A stretch of 64,000 bases of DNA from contig LSRY02000003.1 of the NCBI GenBank assembly GCA_001643675.2, positions 186,001 through 250,000 of the forward strand, in the 5' to 3' direction. Source of the stretch: Monocercomonoides exilis PA203 (lineage: Eukaryota > Protista > Preaxostyla). A model generated the notes under the pieces. It was not told the DNA's origin, did no database searches, and worked only from the letters and a program-made list of their open reading frames with translations. Below, in pieces: positions 57,827 to 63,224 of this stretch (the stretch's first letter is position 1; every line of letters begins with the position of its first letter). The translations under genes were made by a program, and so were the position numbers.

Positions 57827-58299
57827 TATTTGTTTTTTTCAAAAAGTGCTCTGGAGAGCCAGATATTTTCGTTCCCGATAAAAAAAAGGGTGGATATGAC
57901 AAATAACTCACACTATAAACATCAGATTGATTTTTAAGTATTCGAGTCAAATTGTTAATACGAAAAAATATGAAATCAAATAGAATGATACATATGATAT
58001 CACATAATTTCTAATAAGGATTATTGGCGAAATATTATCTAGGTGACAGTCGAATAGCGTGAAATTAATTATTAATATCGTCATATTTGTTGCTTCTAAT
58101 ATTTATGAAATTGTGATTATTGAACGACTCTTCTTTTTTATCGATCTTTCTTTTTTATGAACAACAAAATTTTATAATGGGTTGGATCAGCATGATGAAT
58201 TAGCTGTTTCCATATCTTTTAGTGGAAAACGAAAAACTCATTTATAACTCGTATGCACGTGTTAATTTTTGATTTTTATTCATAATCTGTTTGTTATTT

Positions 58300-59400
58300 A
58301 TGGAAAAACATTTTGAACAAAGGAAACAGAAGTCAAGATCATTGTTTACTTTGTTTTGTTGGAGATCAGCATAAATGAAAATCAAAAAGAAACAGAACGT
58401 ATGAAAGTTTTGCTTATATTTATTTTTTCTGATATTCATATTAAATTTATTTGTTATTAACATTTTTTTGCACAATAATAATATTAACAATCAGAATAGC
58501 TGATGCGGCATTGAAATGAATCAGAAAACCGAAGAAATGAAAGGATTTGTGGAAGAAATAATGAAAGAAAAATTTAGTTCGATTTGCCCAAGAGAATTAT
58601 TCATGAAAAGACACTTAATGATTGAAGAAAAGAAATATTCAATGAGAAATGCAGTTATATTGCTAACACGAAAAGAATGTTGTTGTATGATGAATATTGA
58701 ATGTTATTAATGCTTTAACGATTCATTTTTGAAAAAAATATTTGGAGATCATTTTCAACGAAGATGTGAAGAAAATAAGAGAAGAAGAGCAAAAAGCTTC
58801 TAATTGATCTTTGTGAATGCTATATAACGCTTGACTATGATTTCCCTTTGTGCTAACTATCATTTCGTGTGCTCTGCTTTTGAAAGTTGCATTGAAGAAA
58901 TAGGACGACAAGGCAACGCAAAAAGGAGTGGAAGTGGCATTGCTTGCTTTGAGTAGATCTGGATATTGCGTATGATAACTTCTATTTTTATTCTTTTTGA
59001 AGTATTTTTTTTTCTTATTTTTTGATCAGAAAATTGAAAAAGAAATTAACTTGAATGACATCAAAGAGATTATTCAATATCATCAGGAAAATTGAATTTT
59101 GACAAGGCCTGCCTATCAATCGGTTTGTCAGTTTTTTTATCAGGAGATTAAACAATGATTGCTGCTTGAAGGGAATGATTGAGAATGAGCTGCACTTTGT
59201 GCGAGAGGCAGTAGGAGAGCTGGAAGAGCTGGTGAAGTGTGTGGACTGGAAGAGAAAAGAAGAGGAAATGAGCGAAGAAGAAAAGAAGTAGAGGATAAGG
59301 AAGAGAAGGAGAAAATAAGGAGAAGAGGAAGATGATGAAACAGTGAGAGTAGCAGCTTATTTAAAGATAAATAATAGTTTTCTTCTATTGCCATTGTTGT
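58300..59400 (+). pseudogene. Degenerate intron-containing host multicopy gene inside the left TIR (mirror copy at ~61725-62825, minus strand)
   Basis: Fragments QKTEEMKGFVEE...LMIEEKKYSMRNAVILL, LLKVALKK...TQKGVEVALLALS and LNDIKEIIQYHQE..LTR.AYQS. GT-AG introns at ~58399-58494 and 58970-59029. Resembles an expanded oxymonad helical-repeat family (from recollection, unverified). Confidence 0.65.
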
Positions 59401-59464
59401 TGGAGTTGTGACAGACAGAGAGAGAAAGAAAGAAAAAGTAAGAGTAAGAAAAAGAGAGTGAAAA

Positions 59465-59564
59465 TGTGTGTGTGTGTGTGTGTGTGTGTGTGTGTGTGTG
59501 TGTGTGTGTGTGTGTGTGTGTGTGTGTGTGTGTGTGTGTGTGTGTGTGTGTGTGTGTGTGTGTG
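59465..59564 (+). repeat. (TG)50 microsatellite in the left TIR
   Basis: Counted directly. Confidence 0.95.
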
Positions 59565-60156
59565 TATTGTTGAGAGAGGAAAGCACGAATGAAACAGGAA
59601 AAGATGTAGCAGAGAAGATAGGAGAGGCAGCGACAAAGGCACAGGAGTAGGGTTAGTCGAAGGAGTTTTAAGTGGAGGAGAGAGAAGAGATTTCATTGGG
59701 CCGATCATTCAATGAAGAGGATGAAGAAGAGGATGAAGGAGAGGAAGAGGAAGAAAAAGGAAAAGAGTTGAGCAAATTTTGTGATAGAGATACAGCGCAT
59801 TTTATATTCAACACTTTGAAGTCTTTTTTATTTTTTGTTTACATCTTTCTTTTTCTGTCAATCTTTCTGTCTTTTCTTTCAGAAAGAAATGGAAGGAAGA
59901 AGAAAAAATAGAAATTGTTTTTGATGAATTTGTAATTATCATGTGTTGAATTCATTTTTTAATTTTTGTACATTTTCATATACTTCTGTTCATCAAGAAT
60001 ATGTTTTATCGTTTATTCATTTTTTTATTATGTTTACGAAATGTTATTTATGTGTGTTAATGTTTGATTCTTTTTATCTGCTTGTGTTATTTTTGTTTTG
60101 AATTTTTTTAATATCCCATTTATCAAATTTTGAAATTTGAATTTCTTTTTGAACAT

Positions 60157-61044
60157 ATGAAACCAAAAGTTAACAGCAGATCGTATTTCAAATAACTTTT
60201 CAAAATATTTTCTTCCGAGAAAGAAACAATTCGATGATTAATCGATGCCAAAATTTTGGAATCAGAACGGTTTTGTTGGAAATGCAAAAAAAATATGAAG
60301 ATTTTCATTTACAATAATTTTACCAGCAGATTTCGGTGCAAGCATCAACAAATTAATATTTGGAAAAATACGAATTTTGAAAGGTTTCGAATCAGAGTCA
60401 GTAACCAATGTTTAATTGCTTTGTGCTTTTGGGTTGGAATGTCTTCGTCACATTGTTCCATGATTTCTGGAAAATCAGAAATCACAATTTCACGAATGTT
60501 TTCTTCATTTAGAAGATGTATTTCACATCATATGGCAGAAAATCATTACATGCTCGGAGGTGAGGGAAAAGAAGTGGAAGTTGATGAAGCTGGTTTCCCG
60601 AAAAGAAAATACAACAGAGGGAGAATCAAACGAAAAAATTGGATATTAGGAGGCATCGAGAGACCAAAGCAGAAAGGTTTAAAGTCAAGATTATTTCTTC
60701 TTCCAGTTTAAAAAAGAACAAGGGAAGTTTTGCATTCATCTATCAAAGAACATATTCAAAAGAAAACTTCAATTTTCACTGATTGCTGGAAAGGATACAA
60801 CGGATTGGAAAAAATTGGTTTCAGTCATTTAACTGTGAATCACAGCAAGCATTTTAGAGATCCCGAAACGAAAGCCCACACTCAAAGAATTGAAAGTACT
60901 TGGAGTCTTTTAAGGAAATCTCTTCCACCAAATGGAGTAAGACAGAAATATTTAAATGATTATTTAAACACATTCACATTTAAAAGAAGTCCTTGTAATT
61001 CTTTTAATAAATTTTTGCATATGTACACATACACTAAATTTTGA
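60157..61044 (+). pseudogene. Merlin transposase with three in-frame stops and no frameshift
   Basis: CWKC...C.H, VEVDEAGF, KRKYNRGR, W.LGGIER, IFTDCWKGY, VNHSKHF and HTQRIESTW. Stops at TAA 60193, TGA 60235 and TAA 60709. Confidence 0.92.
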
Positions 61045-61569
61045 TCATAAATAAAATCTTGCAGTCTGCAAATCAATAATTTTCTGTAAATAAAAAAATT
61101 ATTGAAATCAAAAATGAATAAACGATAAAACATATTCTTGATGAACAGAAGTATATGAAAATGTACAAAAATTAAAAAATGAATTCAACACATGATAATT
61201 ACAAATTCATCAAAAACAATTTCTATTTTTTCTTCTTCCTTCCATTTCTTTCTGAAAGAAAAGACAGAAAGATTGACAGAAAAAGAAAGATGTAAACAAA
61301 AAATAAAAAAGACTTCAAAGTGTTGAATATAAAATGCGCTGTATCTCTATCACAAAATTTGCTCAACTCTTTTCCTTTTTCTTCCTCTTCCTCTCCTTCA
61401 TCCTCTTCTTCATCCTCTTCATTGAATGATCGGCCCAATGAAATCTCTTCTCTCTCCTCCACTTAAAACTCCTTCGACTAACCCTACTCCTGTGCCTTTG
61501 TCGCTGCCTCTCCTATCTTCTCTGCTACATCTTTTCCTGTTTCATTCGTGCTTTCCTCTCTCAACAATA

Positions 61570-61659
61570 CACACACACACACACACACACACACACACAC
61601 ACACACACACACACACACACACACACACACACACACACACACACACACACACACACACA
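61570..61659 (+). repeat. (CA)45 microsatellite in the right TIR
   Basis: Counted directly. Mirror of 59465-59564. Confidence 0.95.
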
Positions 61660-63224
61660 TTTTCACTCTCTTTTTCTTACTCTTACTTTTTCTTTCTTTC
61701 TCTCTCTGTCTGTCACAACTCCAACAACAATGGCAATAGAAGAAAACTATTATTTATCTTTAAATAAGCTGCTACTCTCACTGTTTCATCATCTTCCTCT
61801 TCTCCTTATTTTCTCCTTCTCTTCCTTATCCTCTACTTCTTTTCTTCTTCGCTCATTTCCTCTTCTTTTCTCTTCCAGTCCACACACTTCACCAGCTCTT
61901 CCAGCTCTCCTACTGCCTCTCGCACAAAGTGCAGCTCATTCTCAATCATTCCCTTCAAGCAGCAATCATTGTTTAATCTCCTGATAAAAAAACTGACAAA
62001 CCGATTGATAGGCAGGCCTTGTCAAAATTCAATTTTCCTGATGATATTGAATAATCTCTTTGATGTCATTCAAGTTAATTTCTTTTTCAATTTTCTGATC
62101 AAAAAATAAGAAAAAAAAAATACTTCAAAAAGAATAAAAATAGAAGTTATCATACGCAATATCCAGATCTACTCAAAGCAAGCAATGCCACTTCCACTCC
62201 TTTTTGCGTTGCCTTGTCGTCCTATTTCTTCAATGCAACTTTCAAAAGCAGAGCACACGAAATGATAGTTAGCACAAAGGGAAATCATAGTCAAGCGTTA
62301 TATAGCATTCACAAAGATCAATTAGAAGCTTTTTGCTCTTCTTCTCTTATTTTCTTCACATCTTCGTTGAAAATGATCTCCAAATATTTTTTTCAAAAAT
62401 GAATCGTTAAAGCATTAATAACATTCAATATTCATCATACAACAACATTCTTTTCGTGTTAGCAATATAACTGCATTTCTCATTGAATATTTCTTTTCTT
62501 CAATCATTAAGTGTCTTTTCATGAATAATTCTCTTGGGCAAATCGAACTAAATTTTTCTTTCATTATTTCTTCCACAAATCCTTTCATTTCTTCGGTTTT
62601 CTGATTCATTTCAATGCCGCATCAGCTATTCTGATTGTTAATATTATTATTGTGCAAAAAAATGTTAATAACAAATAAATTTAATATGAATATCAGAAAA
62701 AATAAATATAAGCAAAACTTTCATACGTTCTGTTTCTTTTTGATTTTCATTTATGCTGATCTCCAACAAAACAAAGTAAACAATGATCTTGACTTCTGTT
62801 TCCTTTGTTCAAAATGTTTTTCCATAAATAACAAACAGATTATGAATAAAAATCAAAAATTAACACGTGCATACGAGTTATAAATGAGTTTTTCGTTTTC
62901 CACTAAAAGATATGGAAACAGCTAATTCATCATGCTGATCCAACCCATTATAAAATTTTGTTGTTCATAAAAAAGAAAGATCGATAAAAAAGAAGAGTCG
63001 TTCAATAATCACAATTTCATAAATATTAGAAGCAACAAATATGACGATATTAATAATTAATTTCACGCTATTCGACTGTCACCTAGATAATATTTCGCCG
63101 GATTATTATATTATTGAAAATGAGATTAATTGCTAAATGATTTCAATATCCATCAATTTGTATCTTTAACAACAAAAGACAAAACGAAACACATTTGAGA
63201 GTGAATGAATTAAGATATAAAGAA

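Follow-up and report, generated by a model that had tools for sequence, protein, structure and literature searches.

The window analysed here, 64,000 nucleotides of Monocercomonoides exilis PA203 (contig LSRY02000003.1 of assembly GCA_001643675.2, positions 186,001 to 250,000), contains at 58026-63099 a transposable element built as arm, core and arm, in which two terminal inverted repeats (TIRs) of about 2 kb enclose a core with a transposase gene. The element is a genuine cut-and-paste insertion of the Merlin superfamily in this host, a recent one, and its transposase is now dead. It is a Merlin with long TIRs whose two arms evolve in concert, probably kept alike by arm-to-arm gene conversion as proposed for Galileo. 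The long arms are shared with other copies in the genome and with a whole branch of related transposons. The parts of the element, with the target-site duplication (TSD) at both sides, are as follows.

58018..58025, no strand: left TSD, GGATTATT, read directly; the same letters stand at 63100-63107
58026..63099: Merlin element, whole, 5074 bp, arm-core-arm with a TSD at both sides
58026..60024, plus strand: left arm (TIR), 1999 bp, beginning GGCGAAATATTATC; from repeat search and gapped alignment
58877..59288, plus strand: decayed fragment of a multicopy open reading frame (ORF) family, arm positions 852-1263; from genome matches, mirrored in the right arm
59465..59565, no strand: (TG)50 microsatellite of the left arm, from Tandem Repeats Finder (TRF); right-arm counterpart (AC)45 at 61569-61659
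60025..61109, plus strand: unique core between the arms, 1085 bp, 93% identical to the core of the copy on contig 7
60157..61044, plus strand: Merlin/IS1595 DDE transposase pseudogene, 297 codons, in-frame stops at 60193, 60235 and 60709
61110..63099, minus strand: right arm (TIR), 1990 bp; from repeat search, gapped alignment and terminal motif
63100..63107, no strand: right TSD, GGATTATT, read directly

A gapped alignment of the 1999-bp and 1990-bp arms contains 0 substitutions. The arms differ by one additional T at 59004 and by ten additional bases, (TG)5, at 59465-59474, with no other difference, just as an earlier reading of this DNA (the original prediction) had it: arms that differ only in microsatellite length and one homopolymer base. 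Since both differences are of a type that nanopore consensus often miscalls, the arms may be exactly identical. Together they make up 3989 of the 5074 bp (79%, against a predicted share of about 80%). The element begins with GGCG and ends with CGCC, and GGATTATT abuts both outer ends, so the GGC/GCC ends and the exact 8-bp flanking duplication of the prediction are both present. At both ends the TIR starts 5'-GGCGAAAT, which gives the 5'-GG of Merlin elements, and the TSD has the length, 8 or 9 bp, that they make. The 22-nt terminal motif, searched for in the window with up to 3 mismatches tolerated, occurs only at the two outer ends, with 0 occurrences expected by chance; the arms are therefore not separate elements. 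No tandem sub-repeat arrays were found in the arms besides (TG)n and weak purine-rich runs, and a genome search found no paralogous empty site. The 205 bp adjoining the insertion on the left are unique sequence. A repeat of about 195 bp (57626-57820), perhaps a miniature inverted-repeat transposable element, opens the left flank; at least 228 candidate copies of it, 75-89% identical, occur in the genome.

The core was predicted to be almost entirely an IS1595/Merlin DDE transposase, and a 297-codon frame indeed fills most of its 1085 bp, with the correction that the gene is a pseudogene. Frame 60157-61044 aligns to the intact 297-aa transposase of locus L024 in the same genome over residues 1-295, at 67% identity, without a frameshift and with three stops. 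Its C-terminal piece (60712-61041) matches Pfam PF12762, DDE_Tnp_IS1595, at E=6.7e-16 and 59 bits (cut-off 27); the intact L024 ORF itself matches at E=9.9e-19. The catalytic DDE blocks VEVDEA, IFTDCW and TQRIESTW are in place and aligned with those of intact relatives. The in-frame stops are TAA at 60193, TGA at 60235 and TAA at 60709, where relatives have Lys, Trp and Leu/Ile, respectively. An alternative genetic code was ruled out as their explanation, as TGA occurs as well as TAA and relatives carry sense codons there; the three stops are therefore nonsense mutations. With three in-frame stops the gene is dead, and moving this copy would require a related transposase in trans. By its DDE_Tnp_IS1595 domain, DDE triad, GG termini and 8-bp TSD, the element is a member of the Merlin superfamily.

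The nearest relatives of the transposase outside this genome are at most 35% identical at a coverage of at least 80%, or 46-48% identical across half its length, and no long inverted repeats were seen in two metagenomic contigs that encode outside relatives, a negative that carries little information. A CxxC...CxH motif (e.g. CWKC, then RFRCKH) lies in the N-terminal third of this transposase (60157-60360) and of the ORFs of L018, L024 and L025. This region resembles the zinc-ribbon domain of bacterial IS1595 transposases; it gave no significant Pfam match to that domain.

Other copies and the long-TIR branch

The genome searched was the assembly of 82,301,135 bases in 101 contigs, in which the window lies on contig 25 (C25). 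The outer 300 bp of the element occur at 14 places, which are both ends of seven elements, all with the same termini.

C25 copy: 5074 bp; arms 1999/1990 bp, 0 substitutions; TSD GGATTATT, exact
C7 copy (C7:1180835-1185764): 4930 bp; arms 1943 bp, 99.85% identical; TSD 7/8 (CCAGTTC common)
C91 copy: 2740 bp; arms 806 bp, 99.4% identical; TSD GCTTTTTC, exact
C15 copy: 2214 bp; arms 604 bp, 99.5% identical; no recognisable TSD
C67 copy: 2509 bp; arms 578 bp, 100% identical; TSD GATTTTTC, exact
C30 copy: 2511 bp; arms 575 bp, 99.5% identical; TSD 7/8
C6 copy: 1040 bp; the entire element is palindromic, arm identity 97.8%; TSD 5/8

The TIRs of the family thus range from about 515 to 1999 bp, and the TSDs are 8 bp long, three of them exact and two matching at 7/8. 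A search for further copies with different 8-bp TSDs, which the original prediction had proposed as a check, accordingly yielded a family of seven, the C25 copy included, with arms of about 0.5-2.0 kb. The C7 copy is the most informative of these. Its core is homologous to that of the C25 copy (93% identity), its arm border lies within 27 bp of the C25 border, and its flanks are unrelated to the C25 flanks. Segmental duplication was ruled out as the source of the C7 copy by these unrelated flanks and by its own TSD. The C25 and C7 copies are therefore two independent insertions that share the arm-core-arm plan, and its origin in a single local duplication or in a folded-back assembly is ruled out. 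The exact 8-bp TSD of the C25 copy and the C7 copy of the same architecture show that, as predicted, the whole palindromic unit of 5.07 kb moved as one piece.

The transposase frame of the C7 copy has two stops, at positions that differ from those of the three stops in the C25 copy, so the two genes died independently. Between the two genes the synonymous divergence (dS) is 0.144 and the nonsynonymous divergence (dN) is 0.029; a dN/dS of 0.20 means that the gene was under purifying selection through most of their separate history. The C25 element thus descends from an autonomous ancestor that already had long TIRs.

A Pfam-profile search of the genome scored at least 150 DDE_Tnp_IS1595 matches among 575 candidates. 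The loci were read with 1.5-kb flanks, and several repeats extend past them, so that the TIR lengths for L018-L022, L026, L034, L051, L067 and L072/73 are lower bounds. Inverted repeats of 484 to more than 1057 bp, mostly at an identity of at least 99%, flank the loci closest to the C25 transposase (L018-L028, L030 and L034); where their ends are visible, they have the GG start and 8-bp TSDs (7/8 for L028). Two of them combine these features with an undamaged gene: L024 has 484-bp arms, the exact TSD AAAAGTGC and an intact 297-aa ORF, and L025 has 970-bp arms, the exact TSD CTGCTATG and likewise an intact 297-aa ORF. Across the related subfamilies with intact ORFs, the ORFs are 295-297 aa long and the TIRs 484-971 bp. 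The 30 best-scoring other loci divide into 12 with TIRs of 22-41 bp, several of which visibly start with GG and have 8-bp TSDs, four with inverted repeats of at least 297-625 bp, and 14 with no flanking repeat within reach.

On a tree of 46 transposases, long versus short TIRs come down to one change: all 18 long-TIR rows fall on one side, with a support of 95 in the Shimodaira-Hasegawa-like approximate likelihood-ratio test (SH-aLRT), and all 12 short-TIR rows fall on the opposite side. This tree is a sample and no census; half of its rows were picked by similarity to the C25 transposase, and 16 have no assignable TIR. Long TIRs (0.3 to over 1 kb) are a trait of the whole branch, present at every sampled locus with a measurable repeat, and the sister branch has TIRs of 22-41 bp. 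Some branch members have intact genes and fresh TSDs, and TIRs on the kilobase scale are thus compatible with Merlin mobility. The view of the C25 element as a Merlin variant that is mostly TIR stands; what needed correction is its place, since it is no lone oddity and represents the long end of a clade-wide trait.

At L030:576-3396, an L024-type element (termini at 756 and 3216) lies inside a larger inverted repeat that reaches about 180 bp beyond it at the ends, with GG termini that are not those of the element. Either the element seems to have inserted into the middle of a palindromic one, or the inverted repeat has outgrown the transposon.

Arm identity and its possible upkeep

A tree built from the outer 500 bp of the 14 family arms places the left arm of each element next to its own right arm, except that the C7 pair is not separated from the C25 pair. 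Distances are at most 0.004 substitutions per site within an element and up to 0.27 between elements. The inner 500 bp of the arms are about 90% identical between the C25 and C7 copies, yet match within each of them. We counted arm-against-arm mismatches in 12 elements with complete TIRs, amounting to 10.7 kb of arm. There are 40, of which 32 lie near the inner border, six in the outermost 11 nt and only two in the interior of about 10 kb. Expressed as rates, the outer 15 nt have 6/180 mismatches (3.3%), the recognisable TSDs 3/64 (4.7%) and the interior 2/10054 (0.02%); the excess over the interior is significant both for the outer 15 nt (Fisher test, p=7e-10) and for the TSDs (p=2e-6). The edge mismatches differ from element to element and so arose separately in each copy. 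Such a pattern is what would be expected if one arm were corrected against the other, in place, by homologous repair: the terminal bases would escape, since homologous repair cannot reach the last few bases beside non-homologous flanks.

The inner arm border shifts between close relatives. The C7 TIR runs 27 bp deeper inward than the C25 TIR, and the extra 27 bp are present, inverted, on the other side of the C7 element. The sequence of C25 arm positions of about 575-880 occurs just once, on a single side, in each of the C15, C67 and C30 elements, and that of positions 1563-1906 is single-copy within the C91 core. The arms also hold cargo. For the family of the captured ORF, the genome holds 762-871 candidates that are about 72-76% identical; at other loci the captured segment forms part of a long open frame (250-430 aa), and in the C25 arm its frame is interrupted by stops and shifts. 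A Pfam search with a 429-aa member of this family found no domain. Pieces of the same ORF family are also seen in the arms of the L018-L022 subfamily, a different long-TIR subfamily; the family, an abundant one, could have been captured once, long ago, or several times.

Between the C25 and C7 copies, identity is a mosaic. The outer 1.5 kb of the arms (58026-59500 against C7:1180835-1182300) are 98-99.6% identical, the inner arm about 90% and the core 93-96%, and the switch falls at the TG microsatellite. Because the outer arms have diverged far less than the transposase has at its synonymous sites (dS 0.144), a recent outer-arm exchange between diverged elements is indicated; the outer 1.5 kb were probably exchanged by the same kind of repair.

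Taken together, these observations suggest a mechanism in which one arm would template the repair of the other (intra-element gene conversion) and thereby keep the arms identical, and in which conversion tracts that sometimes overran the border into the core would lengthen the TIR. Extension of a TIR by repair from the other TIR has been proposed for Galileo (PMC3573991). Monocercomonoides exilis is reported to lack non-homologous end joining (NHEJ) and to have a fairly complete set for homologous recombination (PMC6759080), and our six-frame search of the genome found no Ku domain. In a host without detectable end joining, breaks in or near elements would mostly be mended by copying, so that copying repair would be favoured. 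A recombination length threshold, once passed, might reinforce itself.

Several points weigh against this account. Homogenisation is limited, as some old copies have diverged arms (L026, 90%; L028, 97.9% overall; C6, 97.8%), and the model does not account for the restriction of long TIRs to one Merlin branch in the same host. The lengths given for L018-L022 are among the lower bounds, and the read evidence consists of short contigs over the core and the inner arms. Finally, polishing with multi-mapping short reads could erase rare true differences between arms; this caveat is countered by the six outer mismatches, which all lie within 11 nt of the end, a placement that read anchoring does not predict.

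That read evidence comes from contigs of four runs that share sample and study with the assembly, compared over 59570-61560. A contig of a 2016 run covers 59769-60109 without a difference and crosses the junction between left arm and core, with 256 nt in the arm and 85 nt in the core. In the three other runs, contigs start at 59995 or end at 61139, which is exactly 30 nt (k-1) into each arm. Breaks at k-1 are what a true two-copy inverted repeat would be expected to produce, since the assembly graph forks there. Variant contigs have sense codons at 60193 and 60235, in agreement with the C7 copy. These data support both arm/core junctions with a technology other than nanopore; they do not thereby prove the whole unit on one molecule.

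The palindromic structure could in principle be a fold-back artefact, caused by chimeras among the nanopore reads, or a composite in which two independent inverted elements flank a dead transposase. Nanopore libraries do hold template-complement chimeras, and the structure is a near-perfect palindrome; we nonetheless give this almost no credence, as the element is bordered left and right by unique sequence and has an exact 8-bp TSD, contigs of four short-read libraries contain its arm/core junctions and break 30 nt (k-1) into each arm, and a diverged second copy and about 20 related loci have the same architecture. The terminal motif is absent from the inner ends of the arms, and the composite transposon was rejected on the finding that the terminal 22-mer stands at the two outer ends only. 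Fold-back assembly, which the original prediction had named as a possible refutation, is thus disfavoured by short-read contigs of other libraries that reach both junctions. The other refutation that it had named, a short-TIR Merlin that inserted and then had one side copied, inverted, at the C25 locus only, would explain the intact TSD, since an extension of the TIR after insertion would spare it, and TIR borders do move in the family. We hold this to be just as improbable: the C7 copy stands at an unrelated site with its own TSD, its arms are about 1.95 kb long with the border within 27 bp, and their content is the same, down to the captured fragment and the microsatellite. Long TIRs are also found in all the other members of the family and in related subfamilies, so that seven family members and a whole transposase branch disfavour a one-off event.

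A different concern is that the element is real but that its arms differ more than the assembly displays, the identity of their interiors being inflated by read correction and ten rounds of short-read polishing. The assembly (101 contigs, about 82.3 Mb, nanopore) was indeed produced by Canu and polished with Nanopolish and ten Pilon rounds (PMC8767320), the placement of short reads within a 2-kb repeat is ambiguous, and both differences between the C25 arms are of the homopolymer or microsatellite type that nanopore consensus miscalls. Polishing, however, cannot create sister arms within elements that differ by 10-25%. Moreover, differences anchored by unique flanks should have been preserved as far inward as one read length, and the chance that all six would fall within 11 nt is about 2e-6 under a 100-nt anchoring model. 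The 2016-library contig likewise agrees without a difference along 256 nt of the inner left arm and on into the core. We therefore consider inflation highly unlikely.

Somewhat more plausible, if still unlikely, is that the arms are regenerated at each transposition, one end and the core being carried and the second arm made by fold-back (hairpin-primed) synthesis or by template switching in gap repair, so that arms would start identical and then decay. Such regeneration would fit the arm identities of 99.4-100% in most copies with good TSDs, the diverged arms of the older-looking copies L026, L028 and C6, the existence of an all-palindrome member (C6, 1040 bp) and the TIR borders that vary between close relatives. 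Decay should then spread evenly, however, whereas the outer 11 nt and the TSDs have 3-5% mismatch and the interior 0.02%, and C15, L023 and L027, which have no recognisable TSD, keep arm interiors that are 99.5-100% identical. To our knowledge, no DDE transposon regenerates its arms at transposition. The corresponding general claim, that arm identity is built into transposition because an end and the core move and the second arm is copied from the first by fold-back or template switch, we rate slightly lower again. If true, it would be an undescribed mode of DDE transposition, and one step would cover the matched, variable TIRs on the kilobase scale, the pure palindromes and the mirrored cargo.

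Other features of the window

A second Merlin-type element lies at 47898-54826. It is 6929 bp long and has 182-bp TIRs (98% identical), termini that start with GGCATAAGTG and the exact 8-bp TSD ATTAAAGC; it has no similarity to the C25 family besides one 51-nt match. At 10664-11673 there is a near-perfect palindrome of 1010 bp, with 477-nt arms (99% identical), a 56-nt loop and ends that start with GGG. It has no clear TSD visible, and its sequence is unrelated to the C25 family. The only Rfam match in the window is a transfer RNA gene on the minus strand at 9563-9635 (RF00005, 67 bits).

Comparison with described systems

With the Merlin superfamily, the C25 element shares the DDE_Tnp_IS1595 transposase, the DDE triad, the GG termini, the 8-bp TSD and a single intronless ORF of about 300 aa. 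It differs in its TIRs, which at 1999/1990 bp lie outside the range of 24-462 bp described for the superfamily (Feschotte 2004 via Lopes et al. 2021, PMC8101967), a range in agreement with the tens to a few hundred bp that the original prediction had named. The arms are thus about four times longer than any Merlin TIR that we found described. Full-text literature searches of partial coverage, with Repbase entries outside their scope, returned no long-TIR or foldback-type Merlin. Merlin families F1-F7 have been reported from the same host species, Monocercomonoides sp. PA203, in the one published survey of Merlin in it that we found, most of them with TIRs of 23-29 bp and unclear inner borders (PMC8101967). 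That survey used the older 454 assembly, GCA_001643675.1 (PMC8101967, with PMC8767320), and we suspect that in an assembly of the 454 type inverted repeats so long and so nearly identical are collapsed or interrupt the contigs. About 35% of the Monocercomonoides exilis genome is classed as "unclassified repeat" (PMC8767320). Short-read assemblies and standard annotation of transposable elements will miss or mis-size elements such as these. TIR length serves as a descriptor of superfamilies, and the Merlin range ends at 462 bp, whereas this branch spans 0.3 to 2 kb. With long- and short-TIR branches side by side in one genome, long arms that evolve in concert except at their edges, and no detectable end joining, Monocercomonoides exilis offers a natural system for the origin and upkeep of long inverted repeats and for their capture of host DNA.

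The arms of Foldback (FB) elements are arrays of short tandem sub-repeats. The arms of the C25 element have no such arrays, and they surround a 1085-bp unique core with a transposase gene; the label "foldback-type" of the original prediction is apt in that the element is mostly inverted repeat, and fits loosely in that its arms are unique sequence. FB and the Mutator/foldback element Tm1 of root-knot nematodes (PMC3169594) are likewise mostly inverted repeat, with some pure palindromes, of which C6 is the counterpart here. Their transposase superfamily differs from that of the C25 element. Pack-MULEs resemble it in another respect, as the C25 element contains a decayed fragment of a multicopy cellular ORF family, mirrored in both arms; it departs from them in its small cargo, which takes up about 0.4 kb of the 2 kb of an arm, and in having kept its transposase gene.

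A further parallel is Galileo, of the P superfamily in Drosophila. Galileo is also a DDE cut-and-paste element, with TIRs that are long for its superfamily (up to 1.25 kb) and very variable in length (PMC3573991). Its TIRs are 98-100% identical within a copy and extend by recruiting internal unique sequence, and chimeric copies formed by subfamily exchange occur, as do all-TIR derivatives (PMC3573991). The C25 element does not belong to the P superfamily, as Galileo has a THAP/P-type transposase and a 7-bp TSD and the C25 element an IS1595-type transposase and an 8-bp TSD. In addition, the TIRs of Galileo are partly repetitive internally and are longest only in non-autonomous copies (PMC3573991), whereas the C25 element has arms of unique sequence, up to 2 kb long, around a full-length (dead) gene, and its relatives with intact ORFs have arms of 0.5-1 kb. 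Other superfamilies, too, include subfamilies with long TIRs, such as Galileo in P (PMC3573991) and Tm1 in Mutator (PMC3169594). The C25 element is no new kind of element; it is a Merlin with concertedly evolving TIRs on the kilobase scale.

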